NCBI GenBank assembly: GCA_004764695.1
Contig: SMSO01000031.1
Location: 3,324,436-3,388,435 of the forward strand
From: Schizochytrium sp. TIO01
Taxonomy: Eukaryota > Protista > Bigyra: Labyrinthulomycetes
Length of the DNA: 64,000 nt
Direction of reading: 5' to 3'
Made by a program: the position numbers and the translations under genes. Shown one piece after another: positions 1,611 through 39,384 of this stretch. The notes beneath the pieces were generated by a model. It searched no databases. It had not been told where the DNA came from and was given only the letters and a program-made list of their open reading frames with translations. Position 1 is the first letter of the stretch. Every line of letters begins with the position of its first letter.

Positions 1611-2513
1611 TCCGCCTTCGACACCGCGCGCGTGAGTCGAGCTGCTGCGCGGTCCCTGACGCGGCCGCCGTCCACTCGCTCCGCACGCCGCTGCGGTCTC
1701 GCTGCTGCCTCTGCGTCTCCGTCTCTCTCTGTCTCCTGCGAGCGAACCGTGCCCTGCACTGGCTGCCTCGCTGCTCGACAAGACAGACGAGTCTTCTCCT
1801 TCTCCCAACTACTAAGCCAAGAAAGAGCCAATCAACCAATCAGTCAGTCAGTCAGTCAGTCGCTCAGGAACCAGTCCGCCAAGCCACAGCCGGTCTCCCA
1901 GACCCGCCTAGCTCGACGCCCTGCTCTCCGCCTGCCTGCCTGCCTGCCTGCTCCGCGGTCGATGGAGAGGTAGATGGATGGAGGGATGTGCGATCGCCTC
2001 GGGAGCACGCACACCTCTGATGAGAGTGAATCCGTGGCTTTCTTTCTTTGTTTGCAGTTCCTTCTCAAGGGACCCGAGGTTCACTCACGGGCCTTTCTCC
2101 CTCCCTCCTCCCGCCTGATGCGTGCCGTGCGTGCCGTGCCGGAGAACTGACTCGCTATCTCGCTAACCAGCTGCTTCTCCGTCGCCAAGAGTGCGTGCGC
2201 CGTTGATGGATCCGCGGTCCTTCGATCTCGACTTCGGAACGATGAATTGCTTCGATCAGTTCAATCCGAATGAACTGAGCGAACTCAATCTGTCAATCAA
2301 TCAGTCAATCAGTCAATCAATCTATAGACAAAGACTGAGACTGAGACTGAGACTGAGTCCTTATCCCTCGATCGATCGATGTATGTCTCGATGGACCTAT
2401 GTATATTTGCTGTCAAACTGTATCCGCTGCAGTTTGGTGTTTGCTTTGTGGATGGTCGGGTCGATGCGGAGAACGAGCGATTGAGTGGGTGAGGAAGCGA
2501 TTGAGTGAATGGG

Positions 2514-2566
2514 TGAGTGAGTGAGTGAGTGAGTGAGTGAGTGAGTGAGTGAGGAGTGAGTGAGTA
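2514..2566. repeat. (GAGT)n microsatellite
   Basis: Directly visible tandem gagt units, slightly degenerate at the 3' end. Confidence 0.95.
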
Positions 2567-4699
2567 GGAGTGAATGGGTGCTAGCTAGCTAACGCAGATT
2601 GGAGAATTGTGAGCGTGCGTGCCTTCAGGTTATTAGTGATTTGCATTTGGAGGTGCATCCTTTTTCCAGTTTCTCCTTTTACCTTTCTTTTTAGCGCAAG
2701 CTTTGCTTCCTTCCTTCTTTCCTTTTCTTCTTTTCTTCTTGTTTTTCTGTTGTGCTGCTGTTCCCACTAGGCGACTGCCTAGTGGCGACCAAGGGTAGGT
2801 ATCTGGTAGGAAATAGGCTTTTTCTTTTATTCATTTTAATTAAAATTAAAAAGAATGCAAAGAAGGTTTTTTAGGTTTTCAAAGTACGAATGGGAGAAAT
2901 GCTTTCGATTAGCTAGCTCTTACCCAGAATCTTCAAAACGAGGATACCTGCTGTCTGTGTACAAACAAGAGATCTTGGTTGAAGGGTAGGGTAGTAAGCA
3001 ATGGAAGCCTCGTTGCGACAGTAATTTGGCTGCCTTGGTAGAGGAAGGGCGTCTGGTGGTACCTACGTAGCGGCGCTCTATGGTTTGTTTTCGTGGCATT
3101 TGCTTTCCTCGACTCACCAAAGGCTTATGGCGGGGCCTATGCAGCTGCTAGCGTCTGAAAGGAAGAAAGAAGCAAAGGAAGACTTTCGAGTTATGTTTTA
3201 TTTTCATTTTCGTTTTTTCCCCGAAAAAGTAAAACAAAATATAGATTTTAAAACATTCAAGTGCTTCCTCCTTCTTTTACCTTCATCATTTCACCCGTCC
3301 AGCGCAGCTTTCCATAGCTTTACTCTCGTGCTGCTTAATCCTCCTTCTCGACTGTGCAATATTAAAGCTCGGGTGATCGATGCAAACCAGCGAGGGCCAC
3401 AACTACTACTAAATAACTGACTGTCTTGTGGCAAGCTTAAACAAAGACTCTCGCTTTCAGATTCCTTAGATTAAAAAACCAGCTATTTCTTTTTTAAAAT
3501 GTTTTTGTTTTTTTAAGATCAATTAGGCCTCTTTTTATCTCCATTGTTTTTTGCTTTTCCCGCACTTGGGGAGAGAGGTGCACACCTCTGTCTGTCTATT
3601 TGACAAATATGTCTATAATTTTTCTTTATTCCAATCAATCAGAGATCATCCGCTGCCATTGCCAATGTTGCTGCCATCGCCAATGCTGCTGCTGCTACGA
3701 GCAGGATTCATAACAGGCATGCTTTCGAAAGCACCCGTCATGAATACTTTCCCTCAGATCCCTCGTCTCCAGCTCAAGTTGGCAGGTTTCGTGTAGGGTT
3801 TGGGATAGTCAGTTGGGTAGGAGGCCAATTTCATGAAAACAGGCCACAGACCAGCACGAGATCAGTGCACGACAAAGCCAATGCCATAGGAAATAGTGCA
3901 TCGCACCTCGTAGGGAGCAAGAATACACCCCATGATGAGGCTCTTTATGGGCCTCGGGAGTCCAACCTGCCCGGACAGCGCTCTTCGCTAATTCACCAAG
4001 CGGCTCGGCCTCGCTTCCTTGACGGTTCTCTCCACCTTCATTCCATGCGGCGATACTTATAGTGCCACATGTTTCTATTATTTACTATTAACCATCGTTT
4101 ATTATTTATGAAAGAGTGTATAATTCCTCTGACAATAATAGTAAAACTAATTAATGAACTTGAAAAACCATTAGTTAGGCAAAACAATCAAGTTGGAGAA
4201 AGCACCATGTCAATGATGAAGGGAACAGAAGCTCGCTCTAGCACTCCTTCAAATAGGTCCTGCCTGCCTGTTCAGGCGTTGCTAGCGAGCTGGAGTCCAG
4301 GACTGCCGTGTGACACTACTTTCGCCGAATTAGGCGTCGCGCCCAGAGCAGTATGGGATCGGTCAACCCAACTAGACTTTGCACGTCAATCCAGACGCAG
4401 AAACGAATGAATTCAATGATTGACACCTTTAGCTATTGAATGATTGAATGCTTCTTCGTACCACTAAACTGACACACCACACATATTTCAATCTCCTAGG
4501 TCTAGTACTGCAAACGCACTCTACCTACCTTTTACTCTGAGAGCTCCTAGTCGGCATTTTTTTTGTAAATGTAATTTATGAAAAATTACTTTTAGTTAAT
4601 TAAAAAGAGTCAAATAGAAAGATAGGTGCCTGCCACCATTCTGCGATGTGGTACTGCTATAAATTTCACCTGCAGGAGCTGTTGCCAACTTCTCTCCCT

Positions 4700-34296: not shown

Positions 34297-35538
34297 ATGG
34301 AAGATCATCCGGACATCGACAGGACCGAAGTTCCTTCGCGCGTGGACTTGACGAGGCTCACTCCTGCGCAGCTAGAGGCGCTTTCTCGCGGTGAGGCAAT
34401 TGAGTATGAACAATCTCAGCTTGACGCTGCCGTCTCTGGAGCTGTTGCAACAGGTCAGGGCGCTGGGCAGCCTGAGAACTTCAAGATCTTCAAGGACGTC
34501 GACAACCAATTGGATCTCGGCGACGTTGTAAAGCTTGAAGCTGCCTGTCTAGAATGCGGATCTCCCGGTGAGTTTCAACGCGCCGAGATGAACCTGCCAC
34601 GCTTTGGTCGCGCAGAAATTCAGAGCTTTACTTGCTCAGAATGTGCTTACACTTACCGCAAGGTCCGCTCCGTGGCGCCAATTCGTTATGAAGGTGTCGT
34701 GCCATTGGAACCGGGGTATGGACGCCGCATTATTCTTGATGTTCAGTCAGAATCAGATCTGAATCGTGAGGTTCTGCGATCTGACGGCTGTACATTCAGG
34801 GTGCCGGAGCTTGACCTGGAGGTCAGTTCTCGTGTAGGCTCCATGAGCACAGTTGAGGGGTGCTTGCATTCCGTTTCTATGAACCTGCGTTTCCTTCGTT
34901 TCACAAATGATGACTCCGATGACGAGGACGAAGGCGGAGCAATGAGTGACAAAGTTGATGCGCGGGTTAACCAGCTGTTGGATGGAGTTCGCAATGGAAC
35001 CCGTACCTTCCGCCTTATTCTTGAAGATGAAGAGGACGGTTCGCACATCCAGACCTTTGAGGGCGACACACGGATATTTTTCGAAATTTATCCAATTGAT
35101 GGAGACAGCGTGGACTCTGCTTCCCACACAGACCAGCCGCCGGTGTTGTGCGGCCTTAACAGTATCCAGCCTGGTGTTGTTCTTGACGCCATGTATGGGG
35201 ATGAGTGGATCTCGGGTTGCAAGGTCATGGCTATCAATGGCGAAGTCATCTGGGTAGAACGTATTGACGATCCTGGCGCTGGCCGTTGGCATGTCAGTGT
35301 TGAGGAGATCCGCGGTTGTACTGATCCTACATGTGGATGCCAGGTTCTTACTTTGGGAAATGTTGACAGTGGCGCGTTGCAAGACGCGACTCCAGACATG
35401 GAGCTTTTGGACTTCCTCAACAAGTACGCAGATCACGTCGATGCGCAGGAAGGTGCCATCACGAACCAACAAAAACAACAGCAAAACGCCCAGGCTCAAA
35501 TTGAGCAAGAAATTCAAACGCTTGAGGAGATGGATTAG
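34297..35538 (+). CDS. ZPR1-like protein with a single C4 zinc finger + A/B domain and a C-terminal Tudor/SH3-fold-like domain, 413 aa
   Basis: CLECG...LPRFGRAEIQSFTCSECAY finger; DLNREVLRS..C.F.VPELDLEV; STVEG; FRLILED...SHIQ. Tail PGVVLDAMYGDEWISGCKVMAING...WV...W.VSVEEIR. ATG at 34297. Confidence 0.85.
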   Translation: MEDHPDIDRTEVPSRVDLTRLTPAQLEALSRGEAIEYEQSQLDAAVSGAVATGQGAGQPENFKIFKDVDNQLDLGDVVKLEAACLECGSPGEFQRAEMNLPRFGRAEIQSFTCSECAYTYRKVRSVAPIRYEGVVPLEPGYGRRIILDVQSESDLNREVLRSDGCTFRVPELDLEVSSRVGSMSTVEGCLHSVSMNLRFLRFTNDDSDDEDEGGAMSDKVDARVNQLLDGVRNGTRTFRLILEDEEDGSHIQTFEGDTRIFFEIYPIDGDSVDSASHTDQPPVLCGLNSIQPGVVLDAMYGDEWISGCKVMAINGEVIWVERIDDPGAGRWHVSVEEIRGCTDPTCGCQVLTLGNVDSGALQDATPDMELLDFLNKYADHVDAQEGAITNQQKQQQNAQAQIEQEIQTLEEMD

Positions 35539-35887
35539 AGAATAGCCTCCTCGATTTGAGCAAAGCCGTGCTTTTCCGTTTTCCCCCGACATTTAGAGGA
35601 ATGAAGAGCCATGTTATTCACTTTATTAATAGACTAAAAAAAGTATTAAACAAGAAAGCATCATGTTACATACAAATGTTCGAAAGACTCCCTAGACTTG
35701 TCCAAATGGGCTTGGCTAGTGGCACACGGCACTGACAATATGAGCCGAAATATATAAGTCCGTGTTGAAATGCCTTTGAGTCCTAAGGCTTTTCCATTTG
35801 TTTCAACAAATAATTCGTTTTCTGTCAAGGAATAGAAGTTTTATGGAGTTGCGCTTGTAACCAACAGCTTCAATTTAAATAGTTGTA

Positions 35888-37327
35888 TCAGTTTTTCACT
35901 GCTTGTTCACTCGTGAGGTCATCAAAAAGCTCCTTGGTACCTCCCTCTTCACATTCCACGGCAATATCCTTCTGCAAACCTATAGTACGTGCTGCTAGTA
36001 GGTCTCCTGTGTATATTGAGCATGTCTTCACTCTCTCATCAATCACATGTTGCTCAAATTCAACTTTGTCCGTTTCAAACAGAATACATTCTTCAAGTGC
36101 TGTATTTCTCGGTACAAACATCGCCACGTTAGGGGTCACCCTTGCTGCTGCATGATACAATCCAGCCCCGTCATATTTTCCTACTTGAATATGTTCTAAG
36201 AGGAAAGAGTCAACATTCTGATATGTGGGCCCTCCCCACGGAGGGCTTATAAAAATAGCATCTACGGGGACGTTCTCGCGTTCCAGCATGTGCAGAATTT
36301 GCAGAGCGTCCCCGTGAATAAACTCAATCCGGTCATCAACTCCATAGACGCGAGCGTTATGACGAGCCATCTCCAACTTTGCGCGGTCGATTTCAATCGC
36401 AATGACTCTTTCACATGTGAAAGCAAATTGAATTGCATTACCACCTGCTCCAGCAAAGGCATCAACGATGACTTCGCAACGGCAGCGCTCGGCGATGTGT
36501 TCTGCGATTGCTTCTGGTGTCACTGAGTACCATGACTCTTCGTCTAGTTGCACACCGTCGTCAAATCGAGAAAACAATCTATAGCGCTGGGCAAAATACT
36601 TGCGCGGAACTCCCGAGCTCGGGTCGTATTCTCCAACTCCGATATTTGTGACTTGGGGGGCAAAGCTCGAGTATCTAGGCAGGTTGACGCTCGTCTTGAA
36701 CAGCGTTGTTTTCTCATTGAGTTCAACAAAGCCATCGTAGCACAGTACACCCACTTCAGCTGTCGCCGCCTTGGGAAGCGGTACCGTATTTGAAGAGTTT
36801 TTGGTAGGCTTTGCCTTTTTCTTATTTTTTGAAGCAGTATTTGAAGCAGAAACCTGTGCTATATCTGCAAACAGCATGTTTTCAAGCCTTGCGTCCACAC
36901 CTCGTTTGGGTGCAACGCATGACTGTGGCCCTTTGACAGGAGTTTTTAGCTGAAGTATATTCTCTGCAAATATGTCAATGCATTGCTCTCCTTTCCGTAA
37001 AGGTAAGCTCGCAAGATTCTTGCGCTGCACATCGTCAAGGCCGTCAACCTCACTCAGTTCAAGTTGCTTCTCAGAAAACTTTTCGGAAGCCGCATCCTGC
37101 AATTCATTCCACCATTTGTGCAGCTCGTGATCCTCTAGTAAAGTCTCGGCAGACTCACAATCAGCGTGTGCGAAAACAGTAACCTCTCCGGGGGGAGACA
37201 AGACATAAACCAGGGCTGTTTCAGGATCCAACGTGAGCACAACACCCTCCAGCGCCTTGCCATCGTCTAAAACCAGACGCACGGGCGTGTCGCATAGTAG
37301 GAGGACTGTCCCGCGTGGCCTTGACAT
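35888..37327 (-). CDS. TGS1: Trimethylguanosine synthase TGS1 with N-terminal Gemin6-like (Sm-fold + AD) domain, 479 aa
   Basis: KYFAQRYRLFSRFDDGVQLDEESWYSVTPEAIAEHIA, VDAFAGAGGNAIQFA and FISPPWGGP are diagnostic TGS1 motifs. Residues 1-155 resemble Gemin6 (see findings). Confidence 0.95.
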   Translation of the reverse strand: MSRPRGTVLLLCDTPVRLVLDDGKALEGVVLTLDPETALVYVLSPPGEVTVFAHADCESAETLLEDHELHKWWNELQDAASEKFSEKQLELSEVDGLDDVQRKNLASLPLRKGEQCIDIFAENILQLKTPVKGPQSCVAPKRGVDARLENMLFADIAQVSASNTASKNKKKAKPTKNSSNTVPLPKAATAEVGVLCYDGFVELNEKTTLFKTSVNLPRYSSFAPQVTNIGVGEYDPSSGVPRKYFAQRYRLFSRFDDGVQLDEESWYSVTPEAIAEHIAERCRCEVIVDAFAGAGGNAIQFAFTCERVIAIEIDRAKLEMARHNARVYGVDDRIEFIHGDALQILHMLERENVPVDAIFISPPWGGPTYQNVDSFLLEHIQVGKYDGAGLYHAAARVTPNVAMFVPRNTALEECILFETDKVEFEQHVIDERVKTCSIYTGDLLAARTIGLQKDIAVECEEGGTKELFDDLTSEQAVKN

Positions 37328-37929
37328 GATTTAGGCAGACTTCTCCAGACAGGGAAGTTCTTGTAAGAGCAAGGCGCGGTCTAAGCTGCGTTCGCAAATT
37401 GAAAGCATTTCATTGATTGATCCCATTCATTGGATCCCCCAGACTATTGAATTGATGATTTATTTTATTTTATTTTATTTTAATTTGGTTGTACAAAACA
37501 TAATACTGCCTAATATAGTGGAATAGCATACCAAAAATCAAAACCGGGAACACCTCGGTACCTACTAAATAGAAAACAAATTGAAAAACCCATAGGGCCT
37601 ATCTGCACTGCAAAAGCTTGTCTCTGTGAAGGACATAGACCTGTTCATGTACATACCAAGCATCACCTCCCCATCAATGCTCTTGAGATTGGTGCGTCTA
37701 AATTCCAAATGATCGAGTGGCAAACGTATGGCAACGACACACATACGACGTTAGAATTGACGATAATGATCAATAAAACTAAAACAAGAGCAGTCACAAC
37801 CTGGACTCTGGCAAGCTCCTTGCGTAGCGTCGCGAATTAGCGATACTAAAAGCACAGGAAGCAAAAGATCACTGGTAGCGAGTGCAGATTGCGTTCGGAG
37901 CTGTAGGAAAGTGGTGCCTCAGACCACCA
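37328..37929. promoter_or_regulatory. Probable bidirectional promoter between TGS1 and the UPF0489 gene
   Basis: 602-bp spacer between two divergent start codons, with an AT-rich (TTTTA)n core at ~37458-37483. No specific element identified. Confidence 0.5.
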
Positions 37930-39384
37930 ATGGAGCCCACCCTGAGAAAAGGCAAGCTTGCACCAGAGGAGGCCCGCGTGCTGCTGAAGCGACAGCGCAG
38001 AGGCCGTGGTACCGAGGGCGGCACGCTACCTGTTTATGTATCGGGGGACCATAATGAGGCGCTAGAGAGCCTTCACGCTGCAATCCGGGTCGGCGAGGTT
38101 GCATTTTCAGGTCTAGCGATGCTCCATATAGATTCACATCCAGATCTCATGGTCCCACCTCGAATGCCGGCTGACTTGGTGTTCAAGCCTCGCGAGTTGC
38201 ATTACGAGCTTGCGAGATCTGAGACTGGAATTGCAGAATTCATCCTGCCAGCAGTTTACGCAGGTCATCTTGAACGGATTACGTGGCTTCGACCACCTTG
38301 GGCAGATCAGCTTCCAGACGGTTTGTGGGATTTTGAGGTTGGCAAAGCGCCTGGCAGTGACTTTGACGAAGTTGTTACAGAAGATGGTGAAATTGTACGA
38401 GGCGGGCCCCTGCGAGTATCTTGGACGGCGCCGTATTATGCAGATGAGGGACTCTCGTGCTCCGTTTCCGAAATGGAAAATGTCAAGTCTATGCAACTAT
38501 TCGTTGCAGATGAGAATGCGTGTACGCCGGATGCTATCGAGGGTGTCTTTGGAACACGTCCATGGATCCTCGATATTTGCCTAGACTATTTTTCAGTCAA
38601 CAACCCATTCTACGTGGACCTCCAAGACAAACTTGGTGATGAAGCAGCTGACCTTTGCACACAAGTGTATGCAGGTCCACAGCTCCTTTGGCGTCAACTA
38701 GAGATGGCCCGGCAAACCCGTTTTACAACGGCAAATATGTCTTTACATGCGGAAAAGAAGACCGTTGCAAATCATTCAAATATTGAGGCTAAGCAAGGTG
38801 TGGTAAAAGAGGACCAAGTCGCTTCTACAAATCTTACCCTGGAGTTAGTTGATGAGGGTAAGGCACAGATGTCGGAGACCAGGCCCACGTATGTTGATGA
38901 TGACCAGGAACTTAAGCTTCGTCACGATATTGCCAAAAAGGAACATGAAGGTGTTATTGCTGTAGTGTTACGGGTTCCCGACGATGCCGAAGCCCTCGAA
39001 AAACTAAAAGACTGTTTTGATCCTAGAAATGCGAGTACGGACAGCTCTGTCGACGCGTTTGCCACTCTTGCGAAAAAGTTAGATGAGGAAAAACGAGATC
39101 TTGTAAGTTCGTGCGGTCCTAATCTCGACTTACCACATCACCGTTCAACGGATGACCAAATCGAGCGTGTCTTTCAGCACCTCGTGGATCTTCTGACCTC
39201 CATTCCGGTGACTCCGAGCATTGTGACAATTGCTAAGTCTTCCTCGGATATGCTTGATTACACACCTGTAGATCAAGTTGAAACCTTGCTGAAAAAGACG
39301 CTTGAAGTTTTGCAACGTGTCTATCCCCAATTTACTCTTGAGGTTACAAATGTAGACGAGGATGAAGACGAAGAAAGCGTTTAA
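37930..39384 (+). CDS. UPF0489 family protein (C5orf22-like), 484 aa
   Basis: V..DHNEAL; LHIDSHPDLMVP; IAEFILPAVYAGH..I.WLRPPWA.Q; WILDICLDYFSVNNPF; LPHHRS; VTIAKS...DYTP.DQV. First ATG at 37930. Confidence 0.85.
   Translation: MEPTLRKGKLAPEEARVLLKRQRRGRGTEGGTLPVYVSGDHNEALESLHAAIRVGEVAFSGLAMLHIDSHPDLMVPPRMPADLVFKPRELHYELARSETGIAEFILPAVYAGHLERITWLRPPWADQLPDGLWDFEVGKAPGSDFDEVVTEDGEIVRGGPLRVSWTAPYYADEGLSCSVSEMENVKSMQLFVADENACTPDAIEGVFGTRPWILDICLDYFSVNNPFYVDLQDKLGDEAADLCTQVYAGPQLLWRQLEMARQTRFTTANMSLHAEKKTVANHSNIEAKQGVVKEDQVASTNLTLELVDEGKAQMSETRPTYVDDDQELKLRHDIAKKEHEGVIAVVLRVPDDAEALEKLKDCFDPRNASTDSSVDAFATLAKKLDEEKRDLVSSCGPNLDLPHHRSTDDQIERVFQHLVDLLTSIPVTPSIVTIAKSSSDMLDYTPVDQVETLLKKTLEVLQRVYPQFTLEVTNVDEDEDEESV

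Follow-up and report, generated by a model that had tools for sequence, protein, structure and literature searches.

The minus strand of a 64,000-nucleotide stretch of thraustochytrid DNA (contig SMSO01000031.1 of assembly GCA_004764695.1, deposited as Schizochytrium sp. TIO01, forward-strand positions 3,324,436 to 3,388,435; hereafter the window, whose first letter is position 1) contains a gene in which the cap hypermethylase TGS1 (trimethylguanosine synthase) is preceded by a module that is probably of the Gemin6 type. In the explanation that we favor, with reasonable though far from complete confidence, the locus is one intronless gene of Aurantiochytrium limacinum that encodes TGS1 with a Gemin6-type N-terminal module of ~155 residues, a basic linker and the catalytic domain. 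The methyltransferase is recognized directly by its family profile. The module is recognized through related fusion proteins, one of which exceeds the curated cut-off of the Gemin6_C family, whereas the copy in the window has diverged beyond it.

A single gene with a single unspliced mRNA

The gene occupies positions 35888 to 37327 on the minus strand and consists of one open reading frame (ORF) of 479 stop-free codons followed by the stop codon, which is included in the coordinates. A first-pass annotation, made from the letters of the DNA alone, had placed the ORF at exactly these positions; the strand, which it did not give, is now added. The residues it quoted, VRLVLDDGKALEGVVLTLDPETALVYV, VTVFAHADCESAETLLEDH and ILQLKTPVKGPQSC...DARLENML, are all found in the ORF, as is the linker stretch KNKKKAK. 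An identical protein of 479 residues is encoded by Transcript_11360 of MMETSP0961, where it is labeled 'type:complete', and two more exact copies are present in Logan assemblies. The MMETSP0961 header carries the taxon identifier 87120, which belongs to Rhizopogon burlinghamii, a fungus; we take this number to stand, through a known increment error, for 87102, the identifier of Aurantiochytrium limacinum, which agrees with Hondaea fermentalgiana being the closest relative.

The extent of the mRNA was read from contigs of four RNA-type assemblies, one per study, which were placed on positions 35700 to 37600. The RNA nature of these runs is a guess of the software and agrees with the existence of the MMETSP transcript. 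A contig of 1,692 nt (run X1, contig 2) is co-linear over its full length with positions 35722 to 37413, without a gap, joint or loose end, and thereby delimits on the minus strand an unspliced mRNA with a 5' leader of ~86 nt, the ORF and a 3' untranslated region of ~166 nt. The contigs of all four studies terminate between 37367 and 37413, ~40-86 nt upstream of the ATG, and these shared ends look like the end of a transcript and not like genomic DNA. Run X5 yielded only low-depth, broken contigs at the locus and was uninformative. Based on the complete MMETSP ORF and the unspliced contig, it was concluded that a single intronless gene gives rise to a single unspliced mRNA, which supports the fusion read in the first-pass annotation; neither two separate mRNAs nor the splicing out of the N-terminal part was observed.

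Catalytic domain, N-terminal module and related fusions

The C-terminal half of the protein, from residue ~240 onward, had been read as TGS1 in the first-pass annotation, and the family profiles bear this out. Pfam PF09445 (TGS1, RNA cap guanine-N2 methyltransferase) matches residues 284-414 with an E value of 1e-40 and 139.2 bits, the cut-off being 22, and residues 242-445, which constitute the methyltransferase core (35993 to 36604), align with human TGS1 (3GDH_A) at E 2.3e-58. The S-adenosylmethionine-binding motif VDAFxGxGGNxIQFA (VDAFAGAGGNAIQFA) and the motif SPPWGGP are both kept in the 3GDH alignment. As judged from these matches, the catalytic domain is intact and complete. Among the six places in the genome that match PF09445, the window gene scores highest by a wide margin, with 142 bits compared with 50 for the runner-up. 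The latter, a PF09445-type methyltransferase match of 49.6 bits (L002, G000:C13:1491942-1492487), lies within an open frame of 530 residues. In its catalytic domain the window protein is thus like TGS1/PIMT (PDB 3GDH, 3EGI), which it matches fully and with a high score. It differs in bearing the N-terminal Gemin6-type module; among the named TGS1 homologues that were listed, none had been tagged beforehand with a Gemin6 or Gemin7 family of Pfam.

The first-pass annotation had proposed to look for the same architecture in other organisms. An examination of TGS1 homologues and one metagenome scan, which yielded L018, revealed further TGS1 proteins from different sources with an N-terminal module of the window type; another metagenome scan gave no match. 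Together with the window protein they form a family of at least 11 modules. Its members share a G-h-h-x-x-D-P-E-T hairpin, a helix containing 'WW' and a closing block of the form ...P-x-x-x-x-C...RL-x-x-h-h. The closest relative is Hondaea fermentalgiana, whose orthologue is 53% identical in the N-terminus. In the databases this orthologue is named just 'Trimethylguanosine synthase', and most members of the family carry no Gemin Pfam tag.

Homology of the modules was examined with hidden Markov models (HMMs) from which the proteins to be detected had been left out, the scores being compared with those of shuffled decoys, which across these tests reached 12-14 bits or less. An HMM of the thraustochytrid pair detects P0006 at E 1e-6, and an HMM of seven members detects P0007, P0008 and P0009, which were not used in training, at E 5e-11 to 4e-14. 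An HMM of eight members, lacking both the window protein and the Hondaea orthologue, detects the window protein at E 3.4e-10 and 38 bits over residues 24-152, compared with 11.9 bits for the best of 5,000 shuffles. Another member is L018, a clean ORF of 443 residues on a 25.6-kb JGI metagenome contig. A nine-member HMM built without it detects L018 over residues 25-152 at E 5.8e-11, and residues 90-152 of L018 exceed the curated cut-off of Gemin6_C (PF20417), with 40.7 bits against 33.4 and E 2e-10; its score for AD (PF09793), the domain found in LSM12, is only 13.7 bits against a cut-off of 23.4. Two further members match the same range of the Gemin6_C profile at the aligned position, P0072 with 27.4 bits and without an AD match, and P0014 with 16.4 bits and Gemin6_C only. 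By these tests, residues ~24-153 of the window protein are homologous to a module that includes a bona fide Gemin6_C domain. The window protein itself acquires this feature transitively and not directly, because the leave-out HMMs tie it to L018 whereas it has no Pfam Gemin6_C match of its own.

Within the module, residues ~13-64 (37136 to 37291), with the motif G-V-V-L-T-L-D-P-E-T, form a putative Sm-like small beta-barrel with strands predicted at residues 16-19, 25-34 and 39-44. A long helix follows at residues 65-95 (37043 to 37135) and contains the conserved 'WW' motif (HKWWNEL). In a BLASTP comparison of the window protein with L018 (E 0.001) this motif aligns with 'QSWWRGI', and the WW is kept in P0007-P0009 and P0011. 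The next element, residues 96-153 (36869 to 37042), is a Gemin6_C-like alpha/beta sub-domain made up of a helix, three strands and a helix (...ILQLKTPVKGPQSCVAPKRGVDARLENMLF), for which the Gemin6_C matches of the relatives provide support. It is followed by a low-complexity basic linker (SKNKKKAKPTKN...) at residues 154-200 (36728 to 36868), as read from the sequence; the relatives carry a basic run at the same place, which is possibly a nuclear localization signal. Beyond the catalytic core, the protein ends in an acidic tail, residues 446-479 (35891 to 35992), which in the alignment is not conserved in Hondaea. Gemin6 (PF06372 + PF20417; PDB 1Y96, 7BBL) apparently shares this division into two parts, with a small beta-barrel ahead of a Gemin6_C-type domain with PPY...C...L-R. 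Gemin6, however, is a small stand-alone protein whereas the module of the window forms one chain with an enzyme.

Trees of the methyltransferase domain, obtained with FastTree and with a quick IQ-TREE run, place all 11 Gemin6-like fusions in one TGS1 clade, with a support of 99 in the former and a Shimodaira-Hasegawa-like approximate likelihood ratio (SH-aLRT) of 97 in the latter. To judge from its members, the fusion is conserved through this whole clade. The clade also holds P0024, a protein of 298 residues that lacks the module, is sister to P0072 and starts just after the position of the module; its gene call may be truncated, or the module may really have been lost.

A second type of fusion was found among TGS1 proteins of uncultured eukaryotes. 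Four clusters (P0104, P0111, P0116 and P0119) have an N-terminal Gemin7 domain that is significant in Pfam, with scores of 47-61 bits where 25 is the cut-off. The proteins comprise 380-432 residues, and one cluster brings together 36 sequences of ENA and JGI origin. These fusions form a clade of their own, with a support of 99-100. They resemble the window protein in overall size and in having an SMN-complex subunit of the Sm fold N-terminal to TGS1; they differ in that their module is Gemin7, without a part of the Gemin6_C type, and in belonging to a separate TGS1 clade. A profile comparison detects no similarity between the Gemin7 module and the window module (P 0.17). Apparently, then, TGS1 was joined twice, on each occasion to a different partner in the Gemin6/Gemin7 dimer. 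The first-pass annotation had regarded the fusion in the window as a Rosetta-stone link between the cap methylase and the SMN complex, an idea to which this second, separate clade lends additional support.

Two members of the Gemin6-like family have peculiarities of their own. L019 (~1860-3217), from a sister metagenome sample, is the same gene as L018 (2426-3757); the reading frame switches between its module and its methyltransferase, around an A-rich KKIKKKK run, and a homopolymer indel in one of the assemblies is the probable cause. P0010, whose N-terminal end is missing, has a CCCH zinc finger (27.7 bits) at residues 214-240, where it separates the Gemin6-like module from the methyltransferase.

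Gemin6, LSM12 or an unrelated extension

A number of results weigh against the assignment of the module to Gemin6 and against its proposed function. Pfam Gemin6, Gemin6_C, LSM12 and AD match neither the whole window protein nor its residues 1-154, 1-160, 1-240 or 91-154, and for AD (PF09793) this holds in the window protein at E values up to 10. When residues 1-70 were searched alone, the sole match among 24,736 families was PF06372, the Sm-like domain of Gemin6, at E 0.08 and 13.4 bits, below the cut-off of 23.9. By itself, therefore, the N-terminus of the window protein passes the threshold of neither Gemin6 nor Gemin6_C; its signal exceeds chance only marginally and is no more than suggestive. 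A phmmer search with residues 1-170 against 1.84 billion representatives recovered the Hondaea orthologue only, apart from P0005, which was dismissed as a spurious repeat protein, and a search of the ESM Atlas with the N-terminus gave no usable match.

Structure prediction adds to these difficulties. An AlphaFold2 model of residues 1-154, built from a six-sequence alignment before the family had reached 11 members, assigns residues 1-64 a predicted local distance difference test (pLDDT) score of just 31-47, despite the strands predicted there. Residues 68-154 are modeled better, with a pLDDT of 70-91 (74-91 in the Gemin6_C-like sub-domain), as two helices followed by three strands and a further helix, the first helix comprising residues 68-91. 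Foldseek found no significant match in the PDB. Ranked by 'prob', the leading rows are Sm folds, human Gemin6 being first (7BBL_A, prob 0.33, root-mean-square deviation 2.1 Å over 32 columns; 1Y96_A, 0.21), but these values are non-significant. In a wide VIA-align search all scores were below Z 5 and none was significant: residues 1-57 gave small barrels (Hfq, Edc3 LSm, Tudor) at Z~3.3, and residues 92-154 gave KA1- or METTL16-VCR-like modules at Z < 5. Family profiles run against the sequences of the PDB yielded TGS1 matches only and no Gemin6 chain. The solved Gemin6 chains that were seen have 85-86 residues and apparently cover the Sm half only, and for this reason the PDB can probably not confirm the better-modeled half of the module. 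The Sm-type barrel of residues ~13-64 is thus a putative one: the sole Pfam match is the Gemin6 Sm-like domain, and a score above the cut-off, a well-modeled barrel and a matching Gemin6 chain were not obtained.

The content of the genome is likewise only partly favorable. The 64-Mb assembly of 37 contigs contains Gemin2 (80 bits) and an SMN-Tudor protein (34 bits). Six-frame Pfam searches, which may miss small divergent proteins, revealed no stand-alone Gemin6, Gemin6_C, Gemin7 or Gemin8, and the genome search gave no paralogue of the N-terminal module. A profile made of true Gemin7 domains finds in the genome only the methyltransferase. Two weak matches to Gemin7 were dismissed as spurious, one to a long unrelated ORF (L007) and the other to a coiled-coil protein (L008). 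The first-pass annotation had suggested a check for a separate Gemin6, and none is detectable by Pfam. Its statement that the fusion hard-wires the methylase into a Gemin6/7/8 module finds no local support, as Gemin7 and Gemin8, the partners with which such a module would be formed, are undetectable in this genome.

Another point against Gemin6 is the similarity of its C-terminal domain to that of LSM12. The two proteins are easily confused, both having an Sm plus AD-like layout (PMC6385987). The genome contains a separate gene of the LSM12 type, whose AD domain (G000:C36:3240768-3241016; L017:1492-1776) scores 66-67 bits; its ORF begins with GTG and the LSm exon was not located. This true AD domain cross-matches Gemin6_C at 16.7 bits (E 0.006) via a shared PPY...C...L-R motif, so that AD and Gemin6_C are related and low Gemin6_C scores cannot separate Gemin6 from LSM12. 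The family profile can also be aligned with this domain (P 0.003), through the PPY...C...RL motif common to both. The module might accordingly be a paralogue of the LSM12 type (LSm + AD), or a third Sm + AD branch, that was fused to TGS1 and serves as an RNA- or protein-binding adaptor unrelated to the SMN complex. The weak AD match in L018 and the failure to detect Gemin7 and Gemin8 would fit such an origin, as would a statement in PMC6385987, made after Albrecht and Lengauer (2004), that Lsm12 is Sm-like and carries a methyltransferase domain at its C-terminus. All Pfam signals within the family, however, lean to Gemin6: L018 prefers Gemin6_C to AD by 40.7 to 13.7 bits, P0072 and P0014 match Gemin6_C without AD, and residues 1-70 of the window protein match the Gemin6 Sm-like domain only. 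Moreover, the genome already possesses a normal LSM12-type gene, whose domain behaves in the opposite way (AD 67, Gemin6_C 16.7 bits), and a link with the SMN complex is suggested by the parallel fusions of Gemin7 with TGS1. The window protein shares with LSM12 an apparent Sm + AD-like architecture, cross-matching domains and a weak profile similarity, and differs from it in lacking an AD match in a genome that has its own AD gene. Owing to the cross-match and the profile alignment, the choice between Gemin6 and LSM12 depends mainly on L018 and P0072. On these grounds we consider it fairly likely that the module is of the Gemin6 and not of the LSM12 type; the LSM12 origin in the form outlined above seems unlikely to us. 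Of the Gemin6 identity proposed in the first-pass annotation for the N-terminal ~155 residues, it can be maintained that they belong to a conserved module family with a member, L018, that passes Gemin6_C and prefers it to AD; the cross-match between Gemin6_C and AD detracts from that identity. Orthology to Gemin6, rather than descent from a Gemin6/LSM12-like relative, is probable.

Two other explanations carry less weight. The N-terminus could be a lineage-specific extension of TGS1 unrelated to Gemin6, in which case the Gemin6 signals would be due to chance or to convergent motifs. The E value of 0.08 for the window sequence alone, the recovery of nothing but Hondaea by phmmer and the non-significant fold searches are what such an extension would produce. 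They are opposed by the leave-out tests, which at E 3e-10 and 6e-11 over the full module tie the window protein to L018 and thereby to a score above the curated Gemin6_C cut-off, and by the three members that match the same range of the Gemin6_C profile at the aligned position. Together, the L018 score and the leave-out tests largely refute an unrelated extension, which we regard as improbable. The fusion could also be an artefact, if two neighboring genes had been run together into one ORF or if the N-terminal part were not translated or were removed from the mRNA. The complete and identical ORF in the MMETSP transcript, the co-linear contig without joints and the recurrence of the architecture in at least 11 proteins of different sources speak against this, no result was obtained in its favor, and we give it almost no credence.

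Proposed function and neighboring genes

PMC6385987 presents Gemin6 and Gemin7 as Sm-like proteins, with reference to Ma et al. 2005, and calls the Gemin6-7-8 unit one of unknown function. SMN/Gemin6-8 suffices for the release of ICln (PMC13249430), and SMN recruits TGS1 (PMC5605228). If the module is a Gemin6 fused to TGS1, as we favor, it would be the equivalent of Gemin6 in this lineage. The methylase would thereby be tethered to the machinery that assembles the Sm core, through SMN/Gemin2 and the Sm proteins or through a Gemin7-like partner that escaped detection. A small nuclear ribonucleoprotein that has just been assembled would then have its m7G cap converted to m2,2,7G on the spot, directly after the Sm ring has been loaded, and the basic linker may provide the signal for nuclear localization.

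The two types of fusion constitute Rosetta-stone evidence that would place the cap methylase beside the Gemin6-7-8 sub-complex. In a more far-reaching model, the separate fusion of TGS1 to both partners marks the Gemin6/7 unit as an ancestral docking platform that hands fresh Sm cores to TGS1, and the thraustochytrid Gemin6 survives only within TGS1. This model is tentative, and we would sooner doubt it than rely on it. If it is true, a direct contact between TGS1 and Gemin6/7 is predicted in animals and in fission yeast. A full-text search of the literature revealed no description of a Gemin6-TGS1 or a Gemin7-TGS1 fusion, and routine annotation has overlooked the fusion. The nearest precedent is second-hand: it is the Lsm12 with a C-terminal methyltransferase domain that is mentioned in PMC6385987, the source cited there having appeared in FEBS Lett.

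The gene is flanked by two genes on the plus strand. The convergent neighbor, at 34297 to 35538, is ZPR1-like, with 61 bits for jr-ZPR1 and 29 bits for the ZPR1 zinc ribbon. A single ZPR1 module was detected in it, and its C-terminal ~150 residues are without a Pfam match. ZPR1 is an SMN-binding protein. Two of the contigs, from runs X3 and X6, extend past position 35700 into this neighbor and join both genes, whose 3' ends may therefore overlap. Upstream, the divergent neighbor at 37882 to 39384 encodes a protein of the UPF0489 family (C5orf22-like, 122 bits) with a weak match to the arginase family at its start.

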